64,000 nt of DNA from Gekko japonicus. Taxonomy: Eukaryota. This document shows positions 21,900 through 62,961 of the stretch, piece after piece (positions within the stretch are counted from its first letter, which is position 1; the number at the start of each line of letters is the position of its first letter). Made by a program: the position numbers and the translations under genes. The stretch is from contig NW_015167061.1 in assembly GCF_001447785.1 (NCBI RefSeq), positions 2,059,770 through 2,123,769 on the forward strand, read 5' to 3'. The notes under the pieces were generated by a model, which saw only the letters and a list, made by a program, of their open reading frames with translations, was not told the DNA's origin and did not search any database.

Positions 21900-22400
21900 T
21901 GTTTAAATACAGGATGAACTTGTGTAGACCTCCTCAGTGCAAAACACACACACACTCCACCCACCATGCATTTTGGAGGCACTGCGTCAGACAGGTTCCA
22001 AAGTGCATAGCAGCTTCAGGCACAGTGGAAACTTGCCTGTGGAACTCTCTGCCACTCAACCTGGCAATGCACGGAGGCACTCCATCTGTGGCAGGCGGAG
22101 GTAAAGGGCTACTGCCTAAGCTGATGGTGGCACTTGGGATGTGCCAGGGTCTCCGACTTCTGGGCATGGCTTGGCAGGTAGGGGAAGGCCGCATCCCCAG
22201 GGGCTGTGGGAGTGCCCACCACCTCTGCCAGTGTTCTAAGTTTCTGAACCGAGAGATTCTGGAGTGGGATGGGAGCCCCCCTCGGCCAAGAGCAGTTCTC
22301 CATGCCCCTCCCTCTCATGTGCACATAGACACACAGAACATGTTGGGTGTGAATGCCTTTTCCACCTCCGTGCCATCAATACTCAATAGTTCTTCAGAAC

Positions 22401-22406
22401 TTTAAT
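22401..22406 (-). terminator. Probable PADI-A polyA signal ATTAAA
   Basis: ATTAAA on the - strand at a position homologous to ATTAAA 55352-55357 of PADI-B. Confidence 0.55.
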
Positions 22407-23142
22407 GAAAACAGCATGTGAAAACAATTGGGGGGGGGGGGAAGGCTGTTGGCAAGATACAACTTTTTAAAAAGGTCTGCAGACATTCAGAATTACTTGG
22501 AAATGTACATTTCTCACCCTTGTTCCTTTCTGGCACTTGGAGATCTTATGCCACACATTGTAGGGACACACACACACGAGAGAGAGGTGAGCCGTTCCTC
22601 TACCTGAATGCCTGGCCCTTTGAGGTCCTCTGCTTCAGCCCTCGACCGGGGTCTGTGGCAGTTAGTGCTGCATGGACTACAAGGGCCAGCCCTCCCTCTC
22701 TCTCGGTAGCCAAGAAGGTTTCCAAGGGGTCCTCGCTTGGGACAAGTCCAAGGGGTGAACTACCCAGCCCAGTAGCACTGGTCATAATCCCAGCTTCCCT
22801 GGACTCAGGCAGGCAGTGTACTTTGGGGGGGGGGGGCGTGGAGTATGCCTGCAGCCTCCAAGCCTCCTTATTCCTTTCTAAAAACACTAAACAGCCTGAG
22901 GTAGCCCCTAGAACCCTGGAGGGCAGGATGTATCCTTAAGGGTTGTTAACGCGCCTGTTAATGGCTCTCCATACATGATTTTAAGGATGAATGGAATGTC
23001 AGCATTTCCATGCTGGACAGAGTAATGGGAACTGCAAGAGGACCAAATCACCTTCATAAATTCCCACCAAGAGAACCCAGTGAGGCTCCCAAGAAAGTTA
23101 CTGACTGCTACATGCGAGACTGGTGCAAGCTACCCAGGGAAA

Positions 23143-23379
23143 TCAAGGCATCGTCATGTTCCACCACTTGAAGGAGAAAGGCTGCCGACAGACGTTGGTG
23201 CCGCAGTGGATCTCGCCGTGCTTTTGGTGGTAGGCTTTGTAGTCGTCGATGAAGGTGCAGGACAAGCCCAGGGGCTCCAGCAGCCACCGGACTTCCTTTT
23301 CCAGGCAACACTGTCTGTTAACCATGGGCCCGAATGGCTTGGGGATGCCCAAGTGCCTCTCCAGAACGAGCATGTTCAC
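23143..23379 (-). CDS. PADI-A exon 16 (catalytic Cys, stop)
   Basis: [18 protein letters not shown]...[25 protein letters not shown]. Confidence 0.96.
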
Positions 23380-26300
23380 CTGCAGGGAGGAGATGGGCCA
23401 TGCCGGAGGGATGAGAGAGGCTCCAGGCCGTGGTGGATGCTCTGGCGGACTAGCCAGAGTTTTGACATGTAGAATGGATGGATAGTGAAGCCTCACCGGT
23501 TTAGGTAGTGGGTGGGGGTGGGTGGCGTGTCTACTCAGAGAAGTTCCAACCCATTTTGAAGTTGGGCCTTTTAGGGGAGGCCATTCAACTGCTGCCGTGA
23601 TCACGGGCACCTCTGGCCTGCTCCACCCGCGAGGCTGCAGTGTCGGAGATGCCATTCCCCGCTTTCAGCCTCTAATAAGGTGGGGTGGGAACAGGAGGAG
23701 GAAGGCAGGTTTTGAATGGTTGGCAGAGACTGTAATTAGGAGGGAGATTCTAGTGCTTCGGGCATCCTGTGGTAAGACTGAGGGGGCCGGCAGGGTGTGT
23801 GAGAGAATGTTGACAACCTAGAGGCCAAAGGCGGAGTACAAGAAGTGGCAGTCGTGGGAACAGGCCCTGCTGGAAAGCACCTGTACGGGGACCAGGGTCG
23901 AGAGGTGTCTGCCTAGCATCCTTTGCTCTGTTCTCAAAGTCGGCATCCGAGAAAAGAAAGCGCCGGCAGAGTCTTACCATGTTGGGGAAGTACGCAGCAG
24001 CCTGGCCAGAAGGATCCTCGGGCGTAAACAGCTGGGGGAGGTCGATGATGTCTTCCTCGGTCAGCCCCAGCTCCTCCTTGAGGATGTCCCGGTTCCAGTC
24101 GATGCATTTCTGGAGAGGAGGGAAAGCAAATGCTGCTGTGGCCTCGGGCCAGTGCCAAGCGGTCCCTCCCCCAGCCATGTATCAAAGGAGAGGTGGAGAA
24201 CAAGGGGGCAAGGGTCTGTGGCGGGAGAAAGGACCCTCTTCTATGGGGAGGGCATCTCAAGCGCTGCCCCCCTGCCAGGGCACCTCTACCCCCTCGGCCG
24301 TCCACATTCTCATTCTGCTGCTTGTGTAGACCCAGGACACCAGTGCTGCCCTTGGCCGTCCCTGGAAACCCCAAATGCCTGCCGGCACAGCTAATTGTGT
24401 GTGTGTGGGGGGGGTTACCTGGAAATACTCATTGCTGCTCTTCAAATCTCGGTCAGCCAGAATACTTTTTATTTTGACCTGACTGCAAGTATCCAGTTTC
24501 CCTGTAACGAGAGTGGCATTGCTGCTTGGTTAATCCTCATCTGAGATATAAAACCCCTTGAGGCCCGGCCAGTCCCCAAGTCAGGAGCCATCTTATGAAC
24601 CTACCAGGCATTGCTCTCTGCTGAGTCTCCTCTTAGTCCCACAGCCAAGCGTCTTCCTTAGCTGTTCTACCAATGAGAAGCTGGAGACCAAACCCCAGAT
24701 GTTCAGGATGGAAACTGCTGGATTTATGGTCAAATCCAGCTTCCATTTCCTCTGGGTATCTTCCTGGGGCAGGCCATAGATGCCATTCTCCACTTTTATC
24801 TGCCTGGCTGGGTCAGCCCTACCTGTGCTGTGGGGGACCCTGCAGGAGGTCTGTTTTAACCCCCCCGGGTCTCCCCACCAGGGCTCCCTCTAAGCTGTGG
24901 AGTCTTGTGAGCAAAAATTCTACTTTGTGGGCTACGGGCATTAAAGTTATGACCGAGCGATTTGGCTGCTGCATAAATCAGTTTGCTCTGGAGCCATCCT
25001 TCCTGAGCGAAGACAAAAATGTGTGAGCCGGAGGCTAAAAAACTGTGAGCTAGCTCACACTAACTCAGCTTAGAGGGAACACTGGACAAGCAAAAATTCT
25101 ACTTTGTGAGCGACTGGCATTAAAGTTGTGAGCGAGCCATTTGGCTGCCGCATGAAATAGTTTGCTCTGGAGTCATCCCTTCCTGAGCTAAGACGAAAAT
25201 GTATGAGCTGGAGGCTAAAAAACTGTGAGCTAGCTCACACTAACTCATCTTAGAGGCCAGTTTGGTGTAGTGGTTAAGTGCGCGGACTCTAATCTGGGAG
25301 AACCGGGTTTAATTCCCCACTCCTCCACATGCAGCTGCTGGTGTGACCTTGGGTCAGTTACAAGTTCTTTCAGAGCAGTTCTTGAGCGAGCTCTCTCAGC
25401 CCCACCTACCTCACAGGGTGTCTGTTGTGAGGAGGGGAAGGGAATGTAAACCGCTCTGAGACTCCTTTGGGTAGTGAAGGGTGGGGGGTATAAATCCAGT
25501 CTTCTTCTTATACTGTTTTTCCGGTTTTTCAGCTTAGTCAATTGAAGGTGGAGGATGTTCTGAATAATCATGGGCTACAGGAGGCCCCATAAACAGAAGC
25601 TGGCCCTTTTATCCTGCCCCTTCCCCAAGGAGTGCTGGGCATCGTGTGTGTGATTCTGCGCTCCTCAAAACAATCCTGTGGAGTAGACCAGGCCAAGAGG
25701 GTGTGTGCCTAGCCTATGGTCACCTTCAAGGCTGGGCTCTGGTCCTGTTCTGATGCTCAGTCTGTTACACCACAGTGTGTGTGTAGACGCCTGGTACTCT
25801 ATCCTCACCTACACAGAGAGTGTAACGCCTGTTCACTCTTTCTGGTCCTCTTAGCAAACTTAGATCCTCTGCTATTTAGGAGATTCATCAGAAACAAAAG
25901 GCATTCTTGTAGGCTGCTCAAATGCTTGCCTTTTCCCCTGGTATGGGGTTATCCAGCACAATTGTGCCCACCTGCTTTCACATCTTCTACTCCTAAAGAA
26001 GACGGGGACGGCAAAGGATGAGATGGTTAGACAGTGTCATCGATGCAACGAACATGAAATTGAGCCAGCTTCAGAGGACGGCGGAAGACAGGAGGGCCTG
26101 GCGGGAGATGATCCATGGGGTCGCGAAGAGTCGGACTCGACTGTGCGACTGAACAACAACAACTCCTAAAAGTTCCCCCAATGCAGAGTTGTCAAGCTGT
26201 GCTTTTGGCTTACTTAGAGAGAACATGTACTATAAGGCCTGCTGATCAACATGCCACTGTGGCCAAGTTCTCTTCCCTTGATGGCCTGTAAGGTTTGGCA

Positions 26301-29300
26301 TGAGCATGTTCTGGTGACGGTTCTTGCTTGCCCTAGAGACCAGATTATTCTGAGTCTGAGCTGAACGTGGCTTCTCTCTTTGTAGGCTTGGGATATTTTT
26401 CTAATGACTTTTGGTTCTGTCGAGCTAAGCACAGCTGGATGGCTGACAGTCCACTACGAATTCTAGGGAAGCAAGATCGTCCTTTCTGAAGGCTTCAGCC
26501 AGAAGAACCCCCTCACCTACCTTCAAACATGAGCGCGTCTCCGTAGCCCTCTTGCTCCTTCTGCTTCAGCAGTTTGTAGCAGGCGGTGGGACTGGCCAGG
26601 AGCAGGCGGAAACCCTGGAAGCCAAAGAGGGCAGGCGGTGAGTGGGGGGGGGGGAGAGAAGCAGGAAAGAGATAGGGCTGGACATAAGAACATAAGAGAC
26701 GCCAATGTTGGATCAGGCCAAAGGCCCATCCAGTCCAACACTCTGTTTCCCACAGTGGCCAAAAATACCAGGGTCCATCAGGAGGTCCAGCAGTGGGGCC
26801 AGGAGGACACTAGAAGCCCCTCCCTCTGTTGCCCCCCCAAGCACCAAAAATACAGAGCATCCCTTGCCCCAGCCTGAGAGTTCCTATCTATACCTTGAGG
26901 CTAATAGCCACCGATGGACCTCTGCTCCAGATGCTTATCTAATTCCCCCTTGAAGCTGTCCATGCTTGTAGCCACCACCACCTCCTGTGGCAGTGAATTC
27001 CATGTGTGACGGGTACTGTACCACCGTCGTTATGTAAATTGTTTTTAGCAACCATGTGTGTATTTTATGCTGATATTTATGTTGTTGTTCAGTTACCGCT
27101 GTTTTATGTAAGCCACCCTGAGCCTGCCTTGGCGGGGAGGGCGGGATAAAAATCAAATGAATAAATAAACGAAGCATTAACACAGAGGAGAATCCATTGG
27201 AGCGCACCTCCCCACCCCACCTTAAAGCCTTTTCTTAATGGAACATAGGTCAGTTCTAACCGATGTATGAAACATCGGGGGAAGGCCTCGGCCTCTGTGC
27301 CCTGATGATGGGCCTCGACTGGTTGGCTGCTCTGTGGGACAGGATGCTGGACTAGACGGACCCTCGCCGGTCTGACCCAGCAGGGCTCTTCTGTTCCGTT
27401 TTCCAAGCCTAATTCTGGATCCAGCAGAGTTTTCACCACATGAATCTGCTTGACACGGACTTAGACCCTGAGTCAATCAGTGTCTCACCGCTGTCTACTC
27501 AGACTGGCAGTGGCTCTCCGGGTCCCAGACAGCGGTCTTCCTTATCACCTCGTACCCGGTCCTTTCTTCCAGAGATGCCAGGGATTGGAGGTGGGGCCTC
27601 CTGCGTGCCAAGCAGGTGCCCCTACCTACGAGACGCAGCCCGTCCTTCGCCGTGCCCCCCTCAGTGAGCCCATGAGCGGCAAAGGAGAGTCAAGGTTCTG
27701 TCTCCAGGCATTTGCATGCCTAATCGATTGCCTGCCTAGCTTGTCTGTCAGGTTTCCCTGCCCTGGAGTTAAGGCAGGAATCAAGGGAAGGATGACAGTT
27801 GCAGAGAGAGGAGATGCAATCAGTCGTTTCAGTCGGACAGGAGAGAAGGCTTCATAAGTGCAAATAAGCATAGTTGGGTAACAGCAAAAGCAGGACATTG
27901 TTCACGTGAAAGAGAACGCTGGGCCCCCGTGTGCCCTCGGATCCCTTGCACCTCCAAGTCGCAGGAGTGAGATAAACGGATCACGTCCCTCCACAAAGAG
28001 GTGCAGACATCTGTACAACCCACAGTCATGACTCAGACTGAAGAATCTTGGGACAAAGAGCACTGAGTGCTGTCTGCTCATCTTGATTCTAGGTACATCA
28101 TGTGTTTGAAATCTTTATTTCATTTATGTCAGTTACAGGCTGCTTTTCTTGGAGAAACTGGAGTTGGATTACAGAGTATAGGAATAAGCACAGGCAAACA
28201 GCCGTGACCTCCAATAAACAAGGCCGTTGGAGTGGGATTCCAGAACTGGGAAGCACTGCTACCAACAAGTTGTCTGAGGTGTAACATCCCATAGTGCAGA
28301 AAGCGAGTTACAAAGGTAGAAGACTATGCAGGTAAAGGAAGGTGTTGCATGCAACACACACTGCGAGATTCTGCAATCCTTTTACCTTATTAAAAAAAAA
28401 CAGCCTCCTGCCCTGTCCCAGCATGGTTCAAATCCCTGTATAAAAATGCCTCCTGGATATGTCTGTTTTGCACATTCTGCAGAACGGGGTGGGGGTGGGG
28501 CGCTCCCTGACCCCCTTAGTCAGGCCGTTCCACACGGAAGGGGCCCCAAGATAGAATGCACATGAGTTGGGCAGGTGCTGTTCGTATCCACCAGTTTCAT
28601 TTTAGACACCAGATGCAGTTTTTTAGCTCTTGGGCCTGGGGTCTATACGTGCAGTGCCTGCCAAAAACCTCAAAGAGGGCATGAATAAGGTTTTCAGGTG
28701 CGGGGGGTGGGGCTTCAGTGTCCTTGCTACTCTCGCAACCCCACCCCACCCCCAATCAGAAAGCTTTATATAAAAATGGGGAAATAGAACATTACAAAAA
28801 CAAGCCAGTTTGGTGTAGTGGTTAGGTGCGCGGACTCTAATCTGGGAGAACCGGGTTTGATTCCCCACTCCTCCACTTGCACCTGGCTGGATGTTGGGTA
28901 TTTGCATGTTGAAAACACTCAATGTGTGTGTGTATGGGGTTAAATGTCTGTTTTGTTGTTACAGGAAGTCACCTGCCTTTGTGTTAGCCAATGTTAGCTT
29001 AAGTCTGTTAGCCTGCGAAAAGCATCCCTGTTCTGAGAGTTTGATTGGAAGCAAAGTGTTAGTGTCTTTGCATTTTATGGCCTCTCTTCCCCTCTTTGTT
29101 TGTCTTGAAGAAGGAGCATGCTACAGAGGCCATTACAGTTCTTCTAGTCTAGTGAGAGGATGTAGCTTATATAGCTGTTGTTGTTTTCTCCCAAGTTACC
29201 CTTCCCTATGGTAGAATTGTAGTAAACTTTTATATTTTAAACACACATGGACTCTGGGTCTGATTATTGAACTCTGGCATTGCTAAGCTGTTTTTTTTAA

Positions 29301-32300
29301 CTCTGCTGAATTTCATAAAATACTCCAACACTGGATGACCTTGGGCAACCCACAGTTCTGGCACAGCTTGTTCCTGAAAGAGCAGTTCCTGTCAGAGCTC
29401 TCTCAGCCCCACCCACCTCACAGGGTGTCTGTTGTGGGGAGGGGAAGGGAAAGGAGCTTGTCAGCCGCTCTGAGACTCCTTTGGGGGTAGTGAAGGGCCA
29501 TGGGGGTATACATCCAATCTCTTCGTCTTCTTCTTCTTCTTTATGTGAGCCTCCCTGAGCCACCCTTGGCTGGGAGGGCGGGGTAGAAATTTTAAGAAAA
29601 GGAATAAATAAATAAAGCTGCACCATTAGCATATTTTATGCAGGGCAGAGGTCAGGGGATATTTTCATACCTACCTTTCGATCAGGAGCCGGGACAAAAG
29701 TCAGGAACTCGTCCACGTGCCCCACAACCAGCCAATCCGAATCCAGCTCCACAGGAGACTGCACCTGCTGGGCAAAGAGGAAGTCCCGGACGACCTTAAA
29801 CATCTCTCGGTTTTCTGCCCTGTTAAGCAAAGACAAGCAGTGGTCGTTTAAGGGCTGCATCCAGCCCAGTGCTGGCACCAGCTACCTCTTCCCATTTCCA
29901 GGGTGGTCTGCATTTCCCTGGAGAAATCCGTGGACGGCCTCTTCACCGCCGTGGTGTCTTTCCTTGCTCCTGCTTCACACACATTTTCCAGTCATGCACA
30001 ATGACTGAAGGGGCCTCTGCTTCATGGCAGAGTGGCAGACGAGAGAGAGAGAGAGAGAGGAACAGATTTAAAAGCAAGGGGAGAGCCCTGCTGGTCAGAC
30101 TGGTGGCCCGTCTGGTCCAGCATCATCCCGTTTTCCACAGTGACCCACTGGGTAGCCCCGGGAGGCCTGCAAACAGCATGGAGACCAAAACCACCTCTTC
30201 TTGTGTTTCCCCCGCCCCACCCAGGTATTCAGAGGCTGGCAGTTCCGTTTAGCCCTCATGGCAAGTAGGCTGTGCCGGAGGCCTCTCCTCCATTCCATTC
30301 GTCTGCCTGATCCCCTTTTCCAGCTGTCTAAGCCCTGGGGCATCCACCCCATCCTGTGGCACCGAGTTCCACAAGTTGATGATGCATCATGGAAGGAAGC
30401 GTTTTCCCATGCGAGCCCTGACTCAGCCACACCCACACGGCCAGGGTGATGAGCGGGCCAGCTGTCTGCTAAACCCGCTCAAGTGACTCCTGTCCCCCAA
30501 CAGAAGCCCAGGCTAGCCCAATTGCGGAAGCTAAGCAGGGTTGGCCCTGGTTATTACTTGGATGGGAGACCAAGGAAGTCCAGGGTTGCTATGCAGAGGC
30601 AGGCAAGGGCAAACCACCTCCGTTTGTCTCTGCCTTGGCCTCTATGGCCCATGCTAGCCTGATCTCCTCATATGTTGGAAGCTAAGCAGGGTCAGGCTTG
30701 GTTAGTTCTTGGGTGGGAGACCTCCCCCCCCCCCCAAGGCAATGCTCCCTCTAAGCTGTAGAGTCTTGTGAGCAAAAATTCTACTCTGTGAGGTGCTGGC
30801 ATTAAAGTTATGAGCAAGTGATTTGGCTCCTGCATCAATTAGTTCGCTGTGAGCCTGAGGCTAAAAAACTATGCCGAAGAATAGATTCTTTTGAACTAGG
30901 GTACTGGAGAAGACTCTTGAGAGTCCCCTGGACTGCAAGGAGATCAAATCAGTCAATCCTAAAGGAAATCAACCCTGACTGTTCCCTGGAAGGCCAGATA
31001 ATGAAACTGAAGCTCCAAGACTTTGGCCACCCAATGAGAAGGGAGCCCTCACTGGAGAAGAAGACCCTGACGCTGGGAAAGATTGAAGGTCAAAGAAGAT
31101 AGGGACGGCAAAGGATGAGATGGTTAGACAGTGTCATAGATGCAATGAACATGAAGTTGCGCCAACTTCAGAGGACGGCGGAAGATAGGAAGGCCTGGCG
31201 GGATCTGGTCCATGGGGTCGCGAAGAGTCAGACTCGACTGTGCGACTGAACAACAACAACAAGCTCACAACTAGCTCAGCTTAGAGGGAACACTGCTCCA
31301 AGGAAGTCCAGGGGTTCTACACAGAGGCAGGCCATGGCAACCCACCTCTAAACATCTCTTGCCTTGAAAACCCTGCGGGGTTTCCACAAGTCAGTGGTGC
31401 TTCAACAGCACTTCCTATCAACAGAGCCCAACGCTCACTCACCTGGAGATGTAGCTGCCGATGAGGATTCTCCCCAGGGGGTACTGCTTGCCCTTGACGG
31501 TCACCGGGGGGCTGACTTCCAGGTTTCCAAAGGAGTCCAGTTGTGAGGCAACTTGATCAGTAGCCGGCTCTCGTTTCACATAACCAAAATCCGGGCCCTT
31601 TCATGGGTGCAAATGAGAGCAGAGTTAGATCATTCTCATCTCCACGGGTATAGCAAATAGCGGCGTGAAAGGAAAGTGCTGCAACGGCCACAGTGGCTAC
31701 AGCCGGTCTTTGCAGGGCAAATTCATGGCCGTCGGCAGCTGTTAGTGAAGAGAGCTAAAGTGGAACCAGAATGGAGTTTGGTGGCATTCTACCAGTTTAA
31801 ACAGCTGACATTAGTAATCAATTTCAGGCCTTGCCTCTGAGCATCAAAGGAGCATCCATGGACACACCTCAGTGTGATTCAGCAGACCAATGGCAAAAGG
31901 AGTGGCATTGCAAATTATTCACCAGCCAGCTGTGCAGAGGGATGCCTCTGACTTGCACCCAAGGGCCCATTCTGCATCTAGCATTTGCTCCGCTGTTTTA
32001 CCAAACCTATGGTTGAAGAGGAAATTCCCCTCTACGGTTGCACGCCCCTTTCACTGCGATTGTTGGATTTGATGGCAGTGTCCAGTCTGCATGCTGGTTT
32101 CACTTCCTTTGATCTCTCAGTTTTATAGAAGCCGTCTGGATAGATTTATGGCCATTTTGTGGCCGTTCAGGGGTGACTCTGCAGTCAGTATGGCGTTGGC
32201 CGGGGGTACCTGAATGTGGTTTTGAGCTGCATCTTTTCCTGTTCCAGTGTGGGTTTGGTAAAACAATGGAGAGAGTGCTAGATGCAGAATGGGCCAAGAA

Positions 32301-35300
32301 GGGGAACGGGAGGCAAAACTGCCCTGGAACAAGGCCCCCGATGGAGGGAGGGGAGAAGAAGAGAGAAGAGGTTGGATTTATCCCCCGTCCTTCACTCCCC
32401 GGAGGAGTCTCAGAGCGGCTTACAAACTCCTTTCCCTCCCCCCCCCCCCACAACAGACAGACACCCTGTGAGGCAGGCGGGGCTGAGAGAGCTCTGACAG
32501 AAACTGCTCTTTTTTCAAGAACAGCTGTGCCAGAATTATGGCTTGCGCAAGGTCATCCAGCAGGTGCAAGTGGAGGCGTGGGGAATCAAACCCAGTTCTC
32601 CCAGATTAGAGTCCGCCTGCACTTAGCCACTCCACCAAAGGCCTGCACTCGCAGCAGAGGAAAGAGCGAAGGAGCAGGCTTGCAGCAGCGTCTTGCACTT
32701 TTCGGTGGCCACGCAAGATCCAACTCATCTCATACCGGCCGGCTGCCATTGTCCCCACCTCAGAGTCAGTGTGGTCCCACCGGCAGGGGCTCTAATGTCC
32801 AGTCTGCCCTTGCTGCCCAGCCGCCTCTGCCAGCAAAGGGCTCCAGCAGCATCCCAAGAATATCCCAGCTTTCGAATGACAAAAGCCCAAGTTGGATGTC
32901 CTCAAGACGGGAGAACTTCTCTTTGACCATTTCTCATTCTCAGGCCCTTACATGCAAATGTCACCGTTTCTCTAGCCAGGAGGCCCCAGGCACGAAGGGT
33001 CAGGGAGCTCAACCACATACCAAGAGGTCTTTAAAGGGGAAATCCTTCAGCTCTCTGTTTCTAGGGGAGTCGAAGACTACCGGAAACCCTTTGTGGGGAG
33101 CCTGCACGTAGCCGATCTCCATCTCGTCCTGTTCCGGCAGATGAAACGAGAGAGAGAGAGAGAGACGCTCCTTAATTCCTCATGCCGAGCGGTGAGCACA
33201 GCAGCAACAGTCTCCGGTACCCACACCCTTAAAACCACTGGGGCAAGTCTGTCCCGAAACGCCCCGAATCTCAGCTCCATCTCAGAGCCTCACGACACCC
33301 GTTTTCTCTACTGATGACTCCCCAGGGCACTTCAATGCCTTTGTTACAAGGCAATAATTGGCACATAGGAAAGCATGCTAATTTCTTGTATCCTTGTAAA
33401 GTGTATTATATGTGCACACAAAACGCAGGAAAGCTGATACACTTGGAAAACCGGCTCCCGTCTGCACTCGGCACTGCAAGGAATGCTTTCCTATCCACAA
33501 ACTGTGATTGCTGGGGGGGGGGGACACCCAGGAGCTGCCCCCAGTCCCTGGGGCTGCACCTTATCCAACATGATCTGCCGGCCCGTCAGCCTAGCTGCAG
33601 CTCTGCCTCCATTCCCGCAGTCACCTGGATCCAGCGATCTCCGTGGTTCTTCTCTCCTTCGCAGACCGTCAGAGCACAGCCAGCTTTCCACGTCAGCTCT
33701 TTCACAGCACCCACAAAGTCTGTGTTCTTGCTCTCCCTGGCCAGCTTGCTCACAGCCACCACGAAGTCCCTGTCGTTGGTCTTCCTGACCAGCCTGCACA
33801 CGTCGGTCACCACGCCGGGGTTCTCGCTCTCTCTGTGCAACTCTTCCACTGCTTCCACCAAGCAGCTGTAGCCTCTGCTTTCGGCAAGCTCCAGCACCTC
33901 GTCCACAAATTCATCACTGTCGCTAATGCTGGGTATCAGAATGAGAAGGTGAGGAAACTGAAAGCAAGCCACACGCAAAGAAGAAGAAGAGGAGAAGAGA
34001 TTGGATTTATACCCTGCCCTTCAGAGCAGCTGACAAACTCCTTTCCCTTCCCCTCCCCACAACAGACACCCTGTGAGGTAGGTGGGGCTGAGAGAGCTCT
34101 TGAGAGAACTGCCCTTGAGAGAACAGCTGTGAAAAAAGAGAAGAGGAGATTGGATTTATACCCCGCCCTTCACTCGGGGCCTCAGAGTGGCTTCCAATCA
34201 ACTTTCCCTTCCCCTCCCCACAACAGACACCCTGTGAGGTAGGCAGGGCTGAGAGAGCTGTGACAGAAACTGCTCTTTCAAGAACAGCTCTTATCAGAGC
34301 TATGGCTTGCCCAAGGTCATCCAGCAGGTGCAAGTGGAGGAGTGGGGAATCAAACCCGGTTCCCCCAGATTAAGCACTACACCAAACTGGCTCAGTTTCT
34401 GAGAGAGGGAAGGGTTTGCAGTTTCGATTAACCAAATGAACGAAAAATGCTGGGCCCAGAATTTGGGCCTGGTGCAAAAAAATGCCAGCACACCAACCGA
34501 AACTTGTTTGTAGAAAATCTCTTACCTGCAGACGTACACTGTTCTCGGTGGCAAGGTATTGGGGGTCATTATCCACGGAGCAACACGGAAAACCACCGAG
34601 TCGCTGAAAATGGGAGTCGCAGGAAATTTCTGTCACGGGGAGGGGAATGCAGGGGGAGGAGGGAAAAAAGTGTTGGCAAGCATGGCTCCCTTGATCCACA
34701 AAGGACTGTGTTAGAAGCCAGGAATGAAGATTCAAGGCCTCTGCACAGAACCAAGAGGCAAGGATGCCCTGAATTATCCCATTTCAGGCTGCGGGTGCTG
34801 CTGAGGTGGGCAGGGACATGTATGAACTCTTTGCCTGGAGAAAAACAGCACATCAGAGGCTTTTCGATGCAAGAGATTTTTAGCCGGGTTTTTTTCCCAA
34901 CTTGCAGTGCCCACTCTCCCGCCCTCCCTCTCTCCCTTTCTCTCTGCCCAGTAACTGCTTGACCACTTGATTCGGCCAGTGATATAAATCCTTCCGCAAA
35001 AGAGCACGTGTAGCAGCCCCTTTCCTCCCACAGGTATTCCAGGGCACAGTGAGTCTCCCCCAGTGCTTGGGCAGAATGCCCCAAACCCTAAACTATCGAC
35101 GGCTTTGTTGTGTCACCACCCCATAAGAAAAAGGGTCTGAGTCCGACTTGCTCTGGTCCTCCTCTACCCACAGACAGGGCTCTTAGCTACCAACGCTGGC
35201 TTGGTTTCTCCTGGTTTTGCAGCCAACTTGCACTAGAGTCAGTGCCCCGTTTCTTCTGAGCCCACACCGTCATCCTGCCCTGGCTCTGTATTATTCTGTC

Positions 35301-38300
35301 TCCATCCTTCTTCTCCGTCAGAGTTAGCACTGAGGAGCCCATGCACGGCCCTGCCAGAATTCTCCCTCCTGCGCCCCTTCTCAAAGCGGGCACCACAAGG
35401 CTCCTTGGCGTATGCCTCCATACCTTCGACGGGTTCTCTAGCAGCGTGACGTGGAAGGAGACCAGTCCTGAGAAGTCGACATCGGGGAAGGCCAGCCCTT
35501 CCACGTAGAAAACAGCCTCTTGGTCTCTGCTGCCCTTCACCTCGCAGGAGGCGTTCCTCGGCCCCAGCACGGCCTTGTACTGGCTCACCTCCCTCCCCTC
35601 TGCAAAGCAAACACAGGGATTCCCCCACAAAATAACCTCTCCCACCTGGTCGGAACTGGGGGAAGGATCCCTTTTTGCAAACACGGGCAACCTTTGTTCT
35701 CATACGTACACCTAAGGAATTCAGTGCCAGAAGACGAAGCCACTAATCTAGGTGGCATTAAAAAACCCAGAGGACTTAAAAGTCTATTGAGGAAAGGTTT
35801 GTCAACAAGCAGTAGCTACCAAGGCTACATGGAGTTTCCATGTTTGGGAGCAGTATACCTCTGAATGCCGGACACTGGGGAGAGAGGAAGTGGAAGACCC
35901 CTGCCCTCGTGCCCCGTGGTGATGGAAACTGCCCTGAAGTCACAGCTGACTTGTGGCGACCCCGTGCGGTTTCCAAGGCAAGAGACGTTGAGAGGTGGTA
36001 TGCCAAGGCCCTGCTATTCCATGGAGGTCCCCCATCCCAAATACTGCCCACCCTGTTTAGCTTCCACGATCTAGCAAGATCAGGCTACCCACATCAGGGC
36101 ATTTGGCTCCTACTGGAAATTTAATAAAATAATATGGCGGACTAGGTGGACCTGATCCATCATCACTAGGTTGGCCTGATCCCGCAAGGCAGCAGCTATG
36201 TGGGGGAATGTGGGATGCTAGAAGAAGAAGAGGAGATCAGATTAATGCTCCACCCTTCACTAGAGAGCCAGTTTGGTGTGGTAGTTAAGTGCGCGGACAC
36301 TAATCTGGAAGAACCAGGTTTGATCCCCCACTCCTCCACTTGCAGCTGCTGGATGACCTTGGGCCAGCCATAGTTCTGTCAGAGGTGTTCTCTCAAGGAC
36401 AGTTCTGGAAAGAGTTCTCTGTCAGCCCCACCTGCCTCACAGGGTGTCTGTTGTGGGGAGGGGAAGGGAAAGGAGTTTGTAAGCCACTCAGATTCCGAGT
36501 GAAGGGCGGGGGATAAATCCAATCTCCTCCACTACCCAAAGGAGTCTCAGAATGGCTCAAAACAGCTGTGAAAGAAGAGAAGAGGAGATTGGATTTATAC
36601 CCCGCCCTTCACTCGGGGCCTCAGAGCGGCTTCCAATCAACTTTCCCTTCCCCTCCCCACAACAGACACCCTGTGAGGTAGGTGAGGCTGAGAGAGCTCT
36701 CTCTCTAGGACTGCCCTTGAAAGAACAGCTCTGAAGGAACTTGTGACTGACCCAAGGTCACACCAGCAGCTGCATCTGGAGGAGTGGGGAATCAAACCCG
36801 GTTCTCCCAGATTAGAGTCCGCGCACTTAACCACCACACCAAACTGGCTCTCCCGGATGCCAGCCAGGTGGACTGAGGAGAAACTTCTGTTTGTAGAAGA
36901 AAACTTCAGTGCCAAGGTCACATCCCCTTGGAGAAACAGGCCACGCCACGCCCTCTCCTTATGCAGGACTCGGCCATTTTTGTGAAGAGCAAAGACGCCG
37001 GGCGACCATGAGGCCAGAGAGCTCGGCAGACACTCACCCTGCGCCTGGAAGACCCTCACTTTGTCCTTCTCAGAGACTGAGACGTGGAGAACCAGCTGGT
37101 ACTTCTTGAAAATGTCAACAGGTCCTCGTGTTGTCAGAATCATAACTGACATGTCCTTGAGGTCTGGAGAGGAAATCAGACATCAGCTGCAGCAGGAGGC
37201 AACAGGGAAACGTCTCCCTTGCAGGGCTGCGGGCGTCTTAGGACTGGCCGTGGTCGGGTTTAATAGCCCCCCCGGGTGCGGAACCCGGTCCTCCCCATCC
37301 CTTTCTGGGAAAGGCTTTGGAGAATCAGGAAGACTCTGCTGACCAGTCCTGCCCCCCCCCCCCACAGGATTACAGTGAGCCTGACAAACGTGTGTCCACC
37401 ACCTCTCCAGGTGCCCGCCACCTCAACCAGCTCACAAAGTAGAAACACTACAGTGAAGTCATAAAAACGACAGCAGACAAACGATTGACGATAAGCCATA
37501 CAAATGGGCCACTTTTCCTGCCAGCAGTCCTCGAGGGTCATTACAAGCCCACGCTTTGTGTCATTTTGCAGAATGTGGCAAAACCATAATGTTCCAGTGG
37601 CCGTTTTTTAAAAGGAGGTTAGAACTGTAGCAGAAGGGGCCGGTTCAGCTGGGCACATTTATAATGGAACTGGATTGTAGTCCCCTGCAATGATTATTCT
37701 AGGTAATATCTGGCTTTTCCTGCATGATCTTTACCTTGTAATGCACTTTCTACTTTACCTTAGAGAGTTTGCTGTTTGCATTGTTTTCTAATCCTGTAAT
37801 CCTAGTCCTCTCGCATTGTTCATTAGTTGTTTTACAGCTAGATTCGAATCCAATCTCACTTCAGGGACCAACAAAATCTTCAGGATATAAGCTTTCCAAA
37901 GTCAAAGTTCTTCCCCCAAGAATTTTGCTGGTCTGTACAGTGCTACTGGACTCGAATCCAGCTCTTCTACCGCAGGCCAACACGGCTACCCTCTGGAACT
38001 ATCCGCATGGTTGTTTTATACTGTCGGACCGCACAGTTTGTATCCTGTAATCTGCCTTGAGTCTCAGCAAGACAGGTGGATGATGAATGACATAAACAAA
38101 TCCATAACTAAATCCCTTCAAATGGTTGCCTGTGTCCTTATGCTGCTGGGGTGATCGACACTATCCTGTGTGGTGGTGGTCTATAATTATCATGAAGGAG
38201 TGAGAGATGACGTGACTGCTCCACTCCTGGCTGTGGTACCAACTGAATAGCCCGTGGCCCTTCTTCTTGCTGGGGAGAGTGTGCACATCCCTGGAAACTA

Positions 38301-41300
38301 GCTCTCACTTTGAATGTAGCCACTGAAACGAGATCCTGGGTATGGAAAGAACCCTGTTAATCATACACATATACTGTGTTTTATTTTAATGAATGTGTTA
38401 CTGAATGGTCTGCTGACCATACAATAATAAAGCAGTCTGTCTAAGAAGCCATAAAACAGGCTATAGGAACAGCAGAAAGCAACATTTAGCAGCCCGAAGT
38501 GATGTTCGCGAGACACTCCTGTGGTTAAAACGGCTAAAACAGAAGGAGCCCCTCGGTTAGAAGTCTTGAGTAAAAAGAAGCGTCTTGGCCCGGCGCCTAA
38601 AAGAGAGTTTGGCGCATGCCAGGTGAGCCTCAGTGGAGAGGATATCCCAAAGGTGAGAGGCCGCCACAGAAGAAGCCCTGACTCTGGTCCCCAGCAGCCT
38701 CACTCCAGCAGGCAAAGAGGGCAGGAGGTGTGAGGAGGAAGGCCTTCTCTGGCAGGCTGGACAGTGCAGGAGGAGGCGGCCCTTCAGGGACCCCCGCCTC
38801 AAGCCCTTTCTGGCTTTAAAGATAAGAACCAGCCCTTGAACGGTACCTGGGGAAAACGGGCAGGTAGTGTAGGTCTTTCACGAGCGATGTGTGACCTCAT
38901 GCCCAGCCTGGCTGCCTCATAGAGAGAGTGTTACAATCATCTAAACTGGATGTGCTCAGAGTATGGATCACCATGGCTTTTTTAGGAATGGCCGTGACTG
39001 ATCTATACACCAAGGAATGCCACGGAGGAGACCTGATCCAGGATCAGCAACGTCCCTGAGCTATGAACCTGCCCCGGGGGCGGGGGGGGGGGCAAACAAA
39101 AAGCACACAAGGTTTCATGGCCTCAGGTGGTCACTGACCTTCTTCCGATTCCACCTTTTCATCTTGACAGTCCAGCCCCTGTGTCCGGGGCCTGTCTCTG
39201 TCGCAGTTCACCAAGAGGATGGCTCCTTTGCCTTCCGGGCCCCACGTCCACGTCCTCTGCAGAGGCAAAGATCAGTGGCAGGCAGGCCTGGCCGGCACAA
39301 AGACGTCGCGGCACCCCCCGCCTGCCACCAGGGCTTCCACGCAGCCTCCGCCTGTCACTTTTGGAGGGGGGGGTCACGAAAAACAGTGCCCCTCTCACAG
39401 TGGCTAATGGTCAAGCTGGTCTTTGCTGCTGGGAAGAATTATGCAGAGTTTGAACAAATCTGCATGAATCAACCGAGCTGAGCTTGCATGAGCCTGTTTA
39501 CAGGGAAGCGACACCACAAGGTGACGTTTCCCTGTTAATCGCCCGTCCTTGTAAATATGCTCAAATTCACACAGTGAAATTGAGCAAAAGCCCCAAGGAA
39601 TCCCACCACTGAAAATGGACATTGTTGTTCCTGTGGTCACAAAGGAAACACATAAGGGCTCCTCTGAGGCCCTCAAGCGCTCCGGCCTGCCTTGCCCGGC
39701 CGCTTTTACCTGGGTCCGCGCGCCCCCTGCTGCCCTTCCTGCCTTGCCTGGGGGGCTTATACCAAGGACTCGACTCCAGCCTTGACATGGTGCTGAACAA
39801 GATCGACAGACACCCCCCTCAGACTGACCCCTCCGATTCTACTTGCCCGGGGGTCCCAGGAAAGACTGGATTCAGGAGCCGCCTGCACAGGGGTCACCCT
39901 CGCACGTCAGCTGGATGTGGGGCTGGTGGCAAAGGGAATCCACAGAGCCGTGTGCCCTGGGACCAGTGAGCGAGCTCTGGCTAAAGCACTCCAAGACTCG
40001 GTCTTCTCTACCTTATCGGCAACTCTCTTTGTCACGGTTCCGGAGCGGCTTGAATCTGTATCCAGGGAGACCTCTGCAGAATGGTGAGAGGGAGAGAGAG
40101 AAACGTCTGTGGGCCCAAGGAACACGTTGGACAGGTGGGCAACATGTGTCTGTCACTCACATGTTAGTGTTAGCAAGGGGGGAATGAATCCCACCCTTGG
40201 TGGACCACCCACTCAGCAGTCGGCCCACCCACCAGCCTACCCCCGCACAACGGCTGCCTGGTGAATGCAGCAGGGAGGGGGCCGTGGGGCAGCTCCAGGT
40301 CCCCTCCTCACCCACCTGACTCTAGACCTCCCCTCCTCATTCCCCACCACCACCACCTAAATCCTTGACACCTGCAGAGGCACCTCCTGCCCCACCACCC
40401 ACCCCACAACACTCCATTCCCTTGTCTGATGAGTGCAGGCAGCCTTCCTGTCTTGAGGGGGGGGGTTTAAACCCCCTATCCTCCATTTTGGGGGGTTCAC
40501 ATCTTTCTGCAGACCTGGTGGGGTTCCGCTTTTTTCTGAACCTGGCCTCATTCTCTGGGTCTATCGATCCGCATGGGGCTGAGCATTACATCAAGGATCC
40601 CAGTACTGTGAATCCCCCGCTGCCCTGAAGCAAGGGAGGCCCTTGGCCCCCTCTGTATGGGTGGGATAATGCGTAGTGCTGTCCCGCTTCCCCCCCCCCA
40701 ACCATCTCCAGTGCCTGGCTTGGGAGCCACAGCCACAACTTGTGGCATGACAATGCTGCAGGCACACCCTTGCACAGAAGACCAAACTGGACAGTTTACT
40801 GAGTAGTTTTTCATCGTGCCCTTCCTTGAAGCAGCTCCATTGTGGGTGCCCCCCCCCCCCCGGCCGACTAAACCCTCGAAAAAACAAANNNNNNNNNNNN
40901 NNNCAGCACACATATGGTTTGGGGTTCAGGGGAGCGCTGGGGGGGGGGGGGGAGCTTCCAGTTTCCCTCCTGTCTCACTTTTGCTGGCAGAAATGGGGGG
41001 GGGCCTTTCACGCCCTTTCTCTGGCTTCATGTGCTGCAAGGAATGAAAAGCCCCCCCCCCATGCCCTGCTGTTTCTGCTGAGATGGAAACCAGAAGCTCC
41101 TCCTTCCCGCTCACAGCCCTGAACACACAAGTGCTGTTTAAGGTGAGTTCCCTTAATGTACGTCTGGCTGTGAGTCAGGATACGCACTCGTGACCCAGCA
41201 TGTGTTGGACATACCTACTGTGTATTTTAGCCCTTACTCCCCAGTAAGAGTGTTTAGGATTGCTGCCAGCAGTGGCTGGATAGGACCTCCGTCTTCAGAA

Positions 41301-44300
41301 GCCGTTCTGACCCACTGAATACCAGAGCAAAGTCTGAGTCAAGTGGCACCTTGAAGACCACCAAAGTTTTATTTGCAGGATCTTATGCACTTCCGCAGGG
41401 CCTGTAAGACGGAGCTCTTCCACCAGGCTTTCAGTTAGGAGCCGCCCACTAATACCACCAACGGCCACTATTACTATCTGCGGCATAGGCCGGGCTGCAG
41501 TGCAGTGCGATCGCGCTGCCGCTGAGTAGGATGTTCTGGCCCTCTATGGCACGCCATCTTGCCTAAACTGTACTGCGAGCACTTTAATTTGTATATTGTA
41601 ATTGATTGGTTGTTTAACCGGTTTTAAATGTTTATATGAATCTCGGCCCAGTGGGCCAAGTAACGTGAGCTGCCCTGAGCCTGCTTGCAGGGCGGGAGGG
41701 ATAGAAATGTGACAAATAAATAAATAAATACATGTATTCAGAGTCTAAGCTCTGGTGTGCAAAGCACACTTCTTCAGACAAAAGCTCATCCCTTGGATCA
41801 AACTCTGTTGGCCTTCAAGGTGCCTCACTGGACCCAAACTTTGTTCCGCTGCTTCAGACCAACAGAGACGCTCCCGCCTGAATTTTTCTCCACGGGACAG
41901 CAGTTACTGAAGGGGAGCAGCGGGGGCGGGGGCCTCTGCCCCCTGTTCCTCTCTTCGTGGTTCTTCAGCGCCACCCAGAATGGAAGCTGAGGAACTAGAC
42001 ACAGCCTGGATCCGGTCCCACTGGGCGCTTGCCTTCTGAAGCCAGACCCGGTGCCCACCAGGCGCCCCCTCTTCCTGTGCACCTCCTTGTGCTTTTCTGC
42101 TTGACCCCAACGGTTGCCAACTTACCTACGCAGGTGAGCTGGAGCACGGCTGTGGCCATGGGTGTCTCCTCATTGGCCTGGTAATACGAAATTGTTACCT
42201 ACCAAGAGGACACAATGCACTCATCAGTTACTCCAAACTACCGGCTGCTGAGTGCAAACCCCTGACGGCATCAGCTGAGATGGGTGTCAAATGTGGCTGC
42301 AGAAGAGCCGTGGCCCCTGCCATCTCTGGGGGGGGGGAAGCAGGGAGTACACCCATTATTCCATCTTTATCTCACCCTTCCTGGAAGGAGCTCTTCAGTG
42401 CCATCGCCTGGGAGGCAGGTGGGCCTGAGCAAGAGGCCAAAAATCACACGCTGGGTTTCATGGCTGAGTGAGGATTTGAACCCGGCCTCCCAGGTCAAAG
42501 ACTAACGCTCATCCCACACCAGTGCTCTCTCCAGGGTTATTTGCACCCTGGTAGAACTAGGGTTCCCAGTTTATGCTCTTAATGTAGAAAAAGGTAAAGG
42601 TTTCCCTTGCTCAAAAGCCAGTCGAATCTGACTCTAGGGGATGGTGCTCATCTCTGTTTCCAAGCTGAAGAGTCAGCACTGTCCGAAGACGTTTCCATCG
42701 TCATGTAGCTGACAGGACTAAAGGCTGAGGCGCACAGAATGCTGTTACCTTCCCACCAAAACGGTCCCTATTTATCTCCTTGCAATTTCTTACTTTCGAA
42801 CAGCTAGGCTGGCAGGAGCTGGGGCCAGAGGCGGGAGCTCACTCCGTCACACGGCACCAGGGGCTCGAACTGCCGAACTACAGACCTTCCAGTCTGCAGC
42901 TCAGTGTCTTAACCTCTGAGCCACCACAGCTTAATGTAGAAGCACACTTTATTTCTTCACTGGGCACTTATTTTAATGGTTGTTTTAATGGTATTGCATT
43001 AAGACTGATGTCAACCGCCCTGAGCCCGCCTGCAGGGAGGGCGTTATATAAATCAAATCAATAAATAAATAAACGTTTAAAAAGAAATTCCCAAGCCTGT
43101 GCAATTCTCCAGATCTAGGTTCTGTTGCCCTTTTGCCATGTTATGGTTGGAGTTTACTGTTTCTTAGTGTCGTGCCATTCTTTTTTCTGTGATGGGCAGT
43201 TGTGACACCCATGTGCCAATTATGCCCTCAAACAGCCTCCTCCTTGTCATGGCCTCCCACACACAGACCCGCAAGGAGGGCAAGGCAAGCGAGGAACTGG
43301 CCCCCGGGGCACTAAGCGGCACGGCACAGGGGAAAAACACACACCTAAAACACGCACCTGCTCTCCCAGGCTGTCATGCCATTAGGGAAAGGGCACATTC
43401 CAATACATTCAAATCGAAGCAACCAATCAGCGGGGGGAAGGGGGGCCCCTCTGAAGATGGCTTTGTGGGCCAGGCCTGGCAGGCTTGCCAGCTCCCCCCC
43501 CCCCCCCCCCCGGGTCAATCTTAGCCTTCTTGGTGCTTGTCTTTCTGGACATTATATATTCCTGCTCAGGGGTCATTTCCTATGCGAGCGCACAGGAGCG
43601 GAGCTCAGGCAGTAAGGAGCCCAGGGGGCGGGCACATGCAACAAGCCCCACCCCCTGCTACCAGCAGCCCTCAGTCGGGCCACAAGGAGCAAGAAGCAGC
43701 CAGGTAAGTTGCAGAGCCCCCCCTCTCGCCCGCCTTCAGGTACAAGCTCTCCCTCCTCTGTGAGGGCAGATCTGCGTGTCCCCCCCCCCATAGCTAGCAA
43801 TCCAAAACTGTCCAGTGGCACCTTTAAGACCAAGCTTTATTCAGGTAGAAGCTCTCCCTCATCTGCACACTCCCCCCCCCCAGTAGCTAGCAATCCAAAA
43901 CAGTCCAGTGGAGCCTGAGCATTGGGTGTTGCCTTCTGACACACTTCTGGTGATGTCAGGGGGTGTGGCATATGCAAATAAGTTATGCTAGTGAGCTCCT
44001 GCACCTCTTTTGCTACGAAATGACCCCTGTCCCTGCTGGATATTAGGAAAAACTTTTTCACGGTCAGAGTGGTTCAAAGGTGGAATCAGCTGCCTAGGGA
44101 GGTGGTGAGCTCCCCTTCAGTGACAGCTTCCAAGAAGAGGCTGGATGAATATTTGTCAGAGATGCTTTAGGCTGGTCCTGCATTGGGCAGGGGGTTGGAC
44201 TAGATGGTCTGTATGGCCCCTTCCCACTCTAGGATTCTGTGATCTCCGCCGCCACCTTCCTCCCTGCCTTCAAGCTAGAGGAGTTTGCCCCCATTATTCT

Positions 44301-47300
44301 TAAAGGCATACGTTCTTTTCTGGGCCAAAGCCCTCGGTTGCTCAATGCCAGTCTATAGAAAGAGGGTGAGGCATATTAGACTAAGGAAAGATTGACAGGC
44401 TGGGTCAATGGAGTCTTATGGAATTTGTCGGCCAATCAGCGACTCACAAGGGTAGCAGAACCCGCTGCCCAGTGTCCAGTTGCAGCAGGGGAAACTACGT
44501 GAAGGCTGTGCTGGTGGGGCCAGTTTCGCCTTGCTGCTCTGGCAGGGGCTGGGCCTTCGCTGGGCTGTCTGGTAAGGAACGGGGCGGAAACAGGAGTTTG
44601 TGGCTGGTGACGATGAGCCATGGAGCAGATGGTCTCCTGACTCATCTGGCCTGACCTGGGAGAGAAAGAGGGCATGGTGGGATTGGGGGCTGGGGGGAGG
44701 AGCCATGTCTCAGTGGTAGAGGACCTGTTTGGCACGCAGAAGGTCCCGGGTTCAGAAAGACCTCTGCCGGAGACCCTGGTCTGACTCAGTATAGGCTTGG
44801 GCAGGAATGTAAAAAACAGCAAGCAATCCATGACATAAGAACAGAAGAGAAGCCAATGTTGGAGCAGGCCAGTGGCCCATCCATTCCACCACTCTGTCAC
44901 ACAGTGGCCAAAAATACCAGGTGCCTCCAGGAGGTCCAGCAGTGGGGCCAGGACACTAGAAGCCCTCCCACTGCTGCCCACCCCCCAAGCACAAAGAATA
45001 CAGGGCATCACTTGCCCTAGAGTTCTTATTTATTTGTTGTTGCCGTTGTTCAGTTGCACAGTCAAGTCTGACTGTTCAGGACCCCATGGACCACATCACG
45101 CCAGGCCCTCCTCTTCCGTTGTGCTTCTATACCTTGTGGCTAAGAGCCACTGATGGATTTCTGCTTCATATGCTTATCTAATTCCCTCTTGGAGCTGTCC
45201 AAGCTTGTAGCTGCCGCCACCTCCTGTGGCAGTGAATCCCATGTGTGAATCACTCTACATGTGTCTTTTTACTTTTTAAGGAAGAACATTTGATCTAGAA
45301 TGATGGTGAAGGAAGGGGGGTGGTTTGTTTCGTTGTTCTTTCTTCGGTAATTCAGGATGTGTGTGTTTGTGTGCCCCCCAGCCCCACCAGCCACCACTGC
45401 AGCCAAGTGTTGCGCATGTCAGACTTTGCGTGGCGTCATCGTGGATGGCCGTGGTCCTGCACTGCCTGCCCCTTACGCTTCCTGCCATTTTCGAGAAGAG
45501 CCGCTGGTTTTCTTGTGTGGAACAGAAATGGTTAAGATCGTTCGGAAGGAATGGTGTCGCTCTGAATAGCGAGGCAAGGTGTAGCACGGGCAACCAGGGG
45601 CCGTCAACGCAAAGTCTGACCCAATAATATCAATCAGGCTTCATGGAAAGCCTATCAACAAAACCATCATTCAAGTTTACGCCCCAGCTATAGCTGCTGA
45701 GGAGGAAGACATCAGAAGCTTTTATGCAAGTGTCCAGGAAGAAATTGATCGTGTACCTAAAGGAGATGTGCCGATGGCCATAGGCGACTGGAATGTGGAA
45801 GCAGGAAAGGACGCAGAACCAAAGCAAAGCCGCGTCCCCCGTCCCCACTTACTTTCCATGGCTGCAACTGGACACTGGGCAGTGGGTTCTTGTTATCTAC
45901 ATGGACCGCCCCCAGGGGTCCGCAGCTAAGCAGGAGCTTGGTCCCCAAACACAAAGGGGACCTAGGGATCCCAGTCCACCTAGAGTCCACCAATAGCACC
46001 CTTGGCGGGAGATTCAAAACCTCCAATGAGGACAGAGGTGTGCTGGGTGGGAGTGTATAGAGTTGGCCTTGCAGGGCCGTTTTTCCTTGTCTTGTTGTGA
46101 AGTACAATAAACGCGTCTGAACACATTTCGTAGCCCGAGTTCTCCACGCGTCGAACCCAGTACTTTTCAGGGATGCTGCTCCATGCCAGTCTCTGATTGC
46201 GCCATAAATTCCATAAGAATCCACTTACCCCGCCTGTCAATCTTTCCTTATTTTAATAGGCCCCGCCCTCTTTCTATAGTCTTGCATTGAGCAGGCACGG
46301 GGCTTTGGCCCAGAAAAGATTCCGTGGGGAGAAAAACTCTCTGGCTTGAGGGCAGGGAGGAGGTTGGCTGTGGTCCGGAAAGAGAAGCAGGGAAGAAGAG
46401 GAAGAAGGGAGCAAGCCCCGGCCTGGCAGTAGGTCCACGAAGGCTTTTGCTCCACTTTTACGGTGGGGGGGCAAGGAGCTGAGTCTGGTGGGGCAGTGCC
46501 CCCTTTGCCATGGTGAACCACGACGCCCTCCCCACTTGGTTGGTTCAGTCTGAATGTATAAAAATACACCCCCTTCCTAAAGGCTGAGGGGGGGGGGCAA
46601 CAGTGGGAGGGCTTCTAGTGTCCTGGCCCCACTGCTGGACCCCCTGATGGCACCTGGTGTTTTTGATAATCAAAATAAATATCACCTGCTTCAAGAATCT
46701 CAGGCTAGCAGGTGAGGCACAAGCATTTCAACCACAGGAATAATATCTCATCATTGTCCACATTTATGTGCCGTTTTTCTAGAACACTTTCAAGGTGTCT
46801 CACGGTAAGCAAAGAGCAAAAATAAAGGCCATTCAAAATAACTATTAGGAGCTAAATTTTTAAAAAGCCAAAACATCTTTTTTTAAAAAAAATCCTGTCA
46901 AAAATTAACAGAGGAAAATGGGAAAAAAGAAGCTTCTATCATCCTTCCAAAATGCGAATAGAGGAGGATCCCTTCTTGTCTCTAAGGCGAGAGCCAGTCT
47001 GGTGTCATGGTTAAGTGCGCGGACTCTAATTTGGGAGAACCGGGTTTGATTCCCCACTCCTCCACTCGCACCTGGTTGGATGACCTTGGGCAGGACATAG
47101 TTCTGACAAGAGCTGTCCTTGAAAAAGAGCAGTTTCTGTCAGAGCTCTCTCAGCCCCGCCTACCTCCCAGGGTGTCTGTTGTGGGGAGGGAAAGGGAAAG
47201 GAGTCTGTGAGCCGCTCTGAGACACCTTTGGGTAGTGAAGGGCGGGCTATAAATCCAATCTCCTCCTCCTCCTGTTCTTCCTTCTTCTTCTTCTTTCTTC

Positions 47301-57271: not shown

Positions 57272-57505
57272 TCAGGGGATGACGTTCCACCACTTGAAGG
57301 AGAACGGCTTCCGGCGGACGTTGGTGCCGCAGTGGACTTCGCCAAGGTTTTCGTGGTAGGTTTCAAAATCATCGATGAAGGTGCAGGACAATCCCAGGGG
57401 CTCCAACAGGCGACGGACCTCCTCCTCCAGGCAGCACTGATCGTGAATAATGGGCCCAAACGGTTTGGGGATGCCCAGGTATTTCCCCAGAACAAGCATG
57501 TTCAC
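57272..57505 (-). CDS. PADI-B exon 16
   Basis: [77 protein letters not shown], 234 nt. Confidence 0.96.
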
Positions 57506-62933: not shown

Positions 62934-62961
62934 CTGGAAGCCAAAGAGGGCAGGCGGTGAG

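Follow-up and report, generated by a model that had tools for sequence, protein, structure and literature searches.

We analyzed a stretch of 64,000 nucleotides (nt) of Gekko japonicus DNA (contig NW_015167061.1, positions 2,059,770 to 2,123,769 of the forward strand), which is called the window here and whose own numbering is used for all positions. A PADI3-like gene lies on its minus strand at 23143..49016 and was read on that strand. The gene has 16 exons with 728 codons plus a stop, and its ninth exon (33625..33928, 304 nt) carries, ahead of the codon for the catalytic Asp, five consecutive units of 16 codons at the site where human PAD3 has a single helix. The exon junctions were placed by a crude donor/acceptor matrix along with the constraint of compatible phases. 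The homologue, Pfam and PDB comparisons of the gene were done exon by exon, and the joined 16-exon model was used for the checks of frame and length. The joined exons give 2187 nt with consistent phases and a single terminal stop.

PAD_N (PF08526) was matched by exons 1-3, PAD_M (PF08527) by exons 5-7 and PAD (PF03068) by exons 8-13, 15 and 16, with profile positions that are colinear across the gene, and the three domains occur in the order PAD_N, PAD_M, PAD. The short length of exons 4 and 14 precludes Pfam scoring. The closest solved structures are those of PAD3 for exons 8, 9 (tail) and 16, and PAD1 is slightly better for exons 7 and 10. In the numbering of PAD4 the catalytic residues are Asp350, His471, Asp473 and Cys645, and the active-site calcium ligands are Gln349, Glu351, Glu353, Asp369, Ser370 and Asn373. 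Exon 10 (33021..33128, minus strand) opens with the catalytic Asp, which aligns with D350 of PAD3 and with the equivalent Asp of PAD1. A His-x-Asp motif is present in the translation of exon 12, which matches positions 161-207 of the PAD profile, and the Cys motif of exon 16 is aligned with the catalytic Cys motif of PAD3. The context of the calcium ligands is also found: exon 9 ends with Gln, and exon 10 starts with the acidic residues of the calcium site (Asp-Glu-Met-Glu) and holds Asp-Ser-Pro-Arg-Asn, all of which align column for column with PAD1 and PAD3. An earlier note on this DNA had taken the gene for an otherwise intact PAD enzyme gene, and the 16 open exons, the three Pfam domains and the catalytic motifs agree with this as far as sequence can tell.

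Exon 9 begins with one base that completes a split Ser codon begun in exon 8, and 101 codons follow, namely one Ile codon, the five units and a tail of 20 codons. Read from one base in, the exon shows no stop and no indel through the five units, each of 48 nt or 16 amino acids, at 33924-33685. In their order on the minus strand these are unit 1 (33877..33924), unit 2 (33829..33876), unit 3 (33781..33828), unit 4 (33733..33780) and unit 5 (33685..33732), followed by the canonical tail of the exon (33625..33684), which ends with Trp and Gln before the catalytic Asp. Unit 1 comes at the beginning of the exon like the single helix of other PADs, and unit 5 is continuous with the canonical strand, so the duplication is internal to exon 9.

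The units are diverged from one another, with pairwise identities of 44-67% in DNA and of 4-6 out of 16 residues. Units 4 and 5 make the closest pair within the array, and because of the divergence these two are all that Tandem Repeats Finder detects. The period itself was measured by autocorrelation of the exon 9 DNA, which gave a self-identity of 0.557 at a shift of 48 nt, 0.542 at 96 nt and 0.510 at 144 nt, against a mean of 0.30 for the remaining in-frame shifts. Codon-shuffled controls for the 48-nt shift gave 0.312 +/- 0.034, and the observed value was reached in 0 of 5000. Every unit is hydrophobic at its positions 6, 7, 10 and 13, as expected of an amphipathic helix, and positions 1 to 4 or 5 are polar or helix-capping. 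The net charge goes along the array from -7 in unit 1, the most acidic one, to about neutral in units 3-5. The earlier note had described exon 9 as 304 nt with five units free of stop and indel, each keeping a hydrophobic register, and both points held when the exon was re-read on the minus strand and its 48-nt period was compared with the shuffles.

The size and place of the insertion were fixed by alignment with human PAD3. The last full codon of exon 8 (34526..34629, minus strand; its donor fits the consensus with a crude score of 7.1) aligns to C311. The last 39 residues of exon 9, which are unit 5 and the tail, align to residues 311-349, with unit 5 itself on about 311-328. Between the equivalents of C311 and D350 there are 102 residues in this gene and 38 in human PAD3; the excess is therefore exactly 64 residues, or four units, and 728 residues less 64 give 664, the chain length of PAD3. 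On the Pfam PAD profile, exon 8 ends at position 29 and exon 10 begins at position 71, and exon 9 contributes 101 residues. The canonical PAD spacing from C311 to D350, with one helix and about 38 residues, is thus absent from this gene; the departure is a variant feature, and the gene stays in the PAD family. The canonical vertebrate PADI exon 9 has 112 nt, of which the protein-level spacing was verified here, and the region of the unit is near a PAD segment that is ordered by calcium. The 64-residue insertion, and the 664 residues left when four units are taken away, had been put forward before and proved exact against the anchors and the length of human PAD3, and the extra copies of the helix before the catalytic Asp are four by the PAD3 alignments of exons 8, 9 and 10.

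The extra units have a coding character. Their guanine-cytosine (GC) content at codon positions 1/2/3 is 0.61/0.36/0.81, compared with 0.57/0.39/0.70 in the rest of the coding sequence and 0.52 overall in the flanking introns. The open frame taken alone is a weak sign, as about 6-10% of 192-nt stretches of the same composition or from the flanking introns are open by chance; besides it, the units keep their exact length and register.

The homologue search was done with the exon peptide and then with a two-sequence profile, in a length window that left out full-length annotated PADs, and it returned one sequence only, P0003, which is an open reading frame of 133 amino acids on a 1268-nt Logan contig from a second species. 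Intron sequence is present on both sides of it, and hence P0003 comes from genomic or otherwise unspliced sequence. It has five units as in this gene, with no indel. Units of the same rank are identical at 12-15 of 16 residues between the two species (15 of 16 for unit 4) and units of different rank at 4-8 of 16; since the units of the same rank are the closest, the five-unit array is older than the split of the species, with no homogenisation afterwards. The identity to P0003 is 53/65 (82%) for units 1-4, 13/16 for unit 5 and 20/20 for the tail, whereas the intron flanks read in frame are identical at 12/29 (41%; Fisher p = 2e-4 against units 1-4). With Poisson correction, the five units (81 codons, 15 changes) change at about 0.23 of the flank rate. 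Fourteen changes fall within the units, none of them at positions 6, 7, 10 or 13, and unit 1 of P0003 is also acidic. These comparisons are in favour of the old and conserved array that the earlier note had suggested. The note had also named stops or frameshifts in units 1-4 of homologues as a sign against its reading, and in this one homologue those units are open and without indel. When the exon 9 peptide was searched against a library of 1.8 billion proteins, two unrelated repeat proteins were the only matches; the short PAD tail cannot reach significance in a library of this size.

For the exon 9 peptide, AlphaFold2 predicted five helices, one per unit, at exon-peptide residues 3-18, 21-32, 37-50, 53-66 and 69-81 for units 1 to 5, respectively, and the helical nature that had been proposed for the units is in line with this model. 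The overall mean predicted local distance difference test score (pLDDT) is 74 and the predicted template modelling score is 0.60; block means of pLDDT are about 77-89 over the units and 70 over the first ten residues. The tail is disordered in the peptide model and is a strand in the whole enzyme. Foldseek with this model gave nothing significant, the best match having E = 0.2 and a template modelling score of 0.44; the weak resemblance is to designed and TPR-like helical repeats. No repeat family in Pfam matched exon 9, and the phmmer matches to designed repeats were marginal.

The acceptor of exon 9 (33929..33955, minus strand) consists of the AG at 33930-33929 and a pyrimidine-rich tract (15 pyrimidines among the 20 positions -23..-4). 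Of the 15 in-frame AGs that are compatible with the exon 8 donor it scores highest (crude score +3.5), and no other has a pyrimidine tract. The donor is the GT at 33624-33623, and no donor-like GT is found within exon 9. In the reading favoured here, all 304 nt of the exon would enter the messenger RNA by way of the acceptor for 33928. An interspersed repeat occurs in both orientations at 34010-34370 (intron 8), 36400-36760, 32100-32620, 29300-29640, 18030-18760 and other places of the window. Two of its copies are in tandem in intron 8, and one of them ends within about 50-90 nt of the acceptor of exon 9; the pyrimidine-rich sequence upstream of this acceptor may therefore be repeat-derived in part.

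Three further AGs are in register inside the exon. The one at 33737..33738 would start the exon at 33736 and give 112 nt, and those at 33785-33786 and 33833-33834 would start it at 33784 and 33832 and give 160 and 208 nt. These starts leave one, two and three units with crude scores of -6.7, -6.7 and -9.7 and with 5-9 pyrimidines (8 of 20 for the first one), and the four-unit position has no AG. Each internal site is formed by the third base of one codon and the AG of the Arg codon that closes the helix; at 33737..33738 this is part of an Ala-Arg codon pair. The single helix of PAD3 and unit 5 of P0003 end with the same Ala-Arg, and the internal AGs are thus read as by-products of coding. The idea that the repeat unit once contained the intron acceptor, with the internal AGs as its vestiges, was considered and rejected, as Ala-Arg ends both the PAD3 helix and unit 5 of P0003.

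The neighbourhood of the gene was also surveyed. An RCC1-repeat gene is present on the plus strand at about 8.6-16 kilobases (8660-16000), convergent with the PADI gene, and two of its exons match Pfam RCC1 with E = 4e-13 and 6e-10. The mammalian PADI cluster ends beside RCC2, and the RCC1-repeat neighbour seen here would fit RCC2 in that position. The name PADI3-like was given because the position suits the last PADI of the cluster in the mammalian order, and orthology to PADI3 rather than to PADI1 is tentative in view of the slightly better PAD1 scores of exons 7 and 10. Upstream of the studied gene and in the same orientation, a second PADI gene is represented on the minus strand by its 3' exons 13 to 16 (57275-63194), and its last exon has 75% protein identity to that of the studied gene. 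An all-against-all comparison of the open pieces within the window, in which interspersed repeats dominate, revealed no further exon 9, since only the 3' exons of the adjacent PADI gene are in the window and its exon 9 is beyond the edge. Between the two PADI genes, exon 13 together with its flanking intron is near-identical (26447-26712 and 62805-62974), with identities of 86-100% over 24-49 residues on both strands (two minus-strand frames). This is far above the other exons and suggests a gene-conversion tract between the paralogues. DNA likeness between 22400-24500 and 55500-60200 extends past the last two coding exons into both 3' flanks and would fit a tandem duplication of the gene in which the 3' ends can still be made out. 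Runs of N are found in the window at 9154-9169 and 40889-40903.

The explanation that we favour, and hold to be likely, is that exon 9 of an intact PADI3-like gene was enlarged by an old in-frame amplification of a 48-nt unit, is spliced whole and encodes a five-helix stack, which may serve as a charged docking or regulatory arm. Judged from the sequence, it is probably a real and selectively maintained variant of the enzyme. The single amphipathic surface helix that in other PADs connects the strand ending at C311 with the strand, Trp and Gln leading to D350 (PAD3 numbering) would have been multiplied to five within the exon, with a gain of 64 residues. The five units may form an antiparallel helix stack: with the short turns of the model, up-and-down packing is expected, and after an odd number of helices the chain runs on in the same direction as after a single one, which would let the flanking strands stay where they are in other PADs. 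Unit 5, which is the most like the PAD3 helix when the alignment is judged by eye, probably sits on the catalytic domain at the canonical site, and units 1-4 probably extend outwards as an arm that is charged, with an acidic first helix. The arm would provide an added surface for docking of Arg-rich substrates or partners, or for regulation, with the catalytic chemistry unchanged. PAD substrates are Arg-rich, and a docking or regulatory surface is therefore preferred, although with low confidence. A bolder proposal, which we put forward as speculative and rather unlikely, is that this helical arm, running from acidic to neutral by the entrance of the active site, is a PAD module that recruits Arg-rich substrates or alters calcium dependence or the oligomeric state, or that the length of the array is tuned by splicing among 1, 2, 3 or 5 helices.

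The same data may be read in other ways. The extra 192 nt could be absent from the messenger RNA if the AG at 33738-33737 is used, giving a 112-nt exon and an enzyme of 664 amino acids, with units 1-4 as relics of an intronic duplication. This AG is in frame exactly at the start of a 112-nt exon, with C before and G after it, and the shortened product has the length of PAD3; but its score and pyrimidine count fall far behind those of the acceptor for 33928, and it lies in the helix-end Ala-Arg that is the same in human PAD3. Relics in an intron are also not expected to be open, free of indels, in helical register and 82% conserved against 41% in the flanking intron, nor to have the coding-like GC of the extra units, and we consider this outcome improbable. 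A little more room is left for the production of both forms, with alternative use of the in-register AGs (exon starts 33736, 33784 and 33832) yielding isoforms of 1, 2, 3 or 5 helices that would tune the enzyme. The exons of 112, 160 and 208 nt would all be in frame, but the three internal AGs are in weak contexts, have a much better acceptor 96-192 nt upstream and are accounted for by conserved Arg codons, and so this too seems unlikely. It is hardly credible that the array is an artefact of assembly, or that the gene is a pseudogene copy in decay or of recent expansion: tandem repeats can be mis-assembled, but units that differ by 33-56% in DNA are not collapsible or expandable by an assembler, the independent contig of another species has the same five units, and no damage is seen in the frame of 728 codons, in its splice sites or in the catalytic motifs.

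Several points nevertheless weigh against the five-helix arm spliced in as a whole. The splice sites were scored with a crude matrix of our own making and not with a trained model, which weakens the argument from splice signals, and the three in-register internal AGs leave room for shorter isoforms. The selection comparison is of one species pair with 29 intron codons as the neutral control, P0003 was compared as protein, and the conservation of the array is supported by this one other species. The AlphaFold2 input was the exon 9 peptide alone with a two-sequence alignment, by which neither the packing of the helices nor their place on the enzyme is fixed, and the function given to the arm is purely inferred.

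Among the known systems, human PAD3 (PADI3; PDB 7D4Y and 6CE1; 664 amino acids) is alike in the exon boundaries at C311 and D350, in its length once 64 residues are subtracted and in the catalytic Asp and Cys motifs, and it differs by its single helix and 38 residues from C311 to D350, compared with five helices and 102 residues in this gene. Human PAD1, PAD2 and PAD4 (PDB 5HP5, 4N20 and 1WDA) share the three-domain enzyme and the exon-level matches, and they too have a single helix at the site of the array. The alpha-helical repeat proteins, both TPR-like and designed, resemble the exon peptide in its predicted five consecutive helices with short turns. However, the TPR-like repeat is a helix pair of 34 residues and the unit here is one helix of 16 residues, and the array would have come from duplication of the enzyme's own helix and not from an acquired domain, with no significant match to helical repeat domains. 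The Trp of the exon 9 tail is equivalent to W347 of PAD4, which is a substrate-binding residue (PMC5314407). The residues listed for the dimer interface of PAD4 are 6, 8, 237, 273, 279-283, 433-443 and 544-548 (PMC5314407, PMC3120853); as these exclude the 313-330 helix, no known role of that helix predicts the function of the array.

The earlier note knew of no described PAD with this architecture, and no description of a PAD with such an insertion was found in the papers that were searched on PADI evolution and reptile PADs. Annotated proteins in the public databases may carry the array unremarked. To our knowledge the catalytic domain of PADs, which are much-studied drug targets, is highly conserved in length across vertebrates, and what is seen here looks like a naturally tolerated and conserved helical array of 64 residues that ends some 20 residues ahead of the catalytic Asp. 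If the array is unexpressed or functionally neutral, it would be merely a lineage-specific curiosity. Were it expressed, it would be evidence that large additions can be tolerated on this face of the catalytic domain, and the 728-residue enzyme and the form with four units less would offer a natural comparison for substrate choice, calcium activation and assembly. The array would also be a clean example of a structural element that was multiplied within one exon and then held in register by selection.

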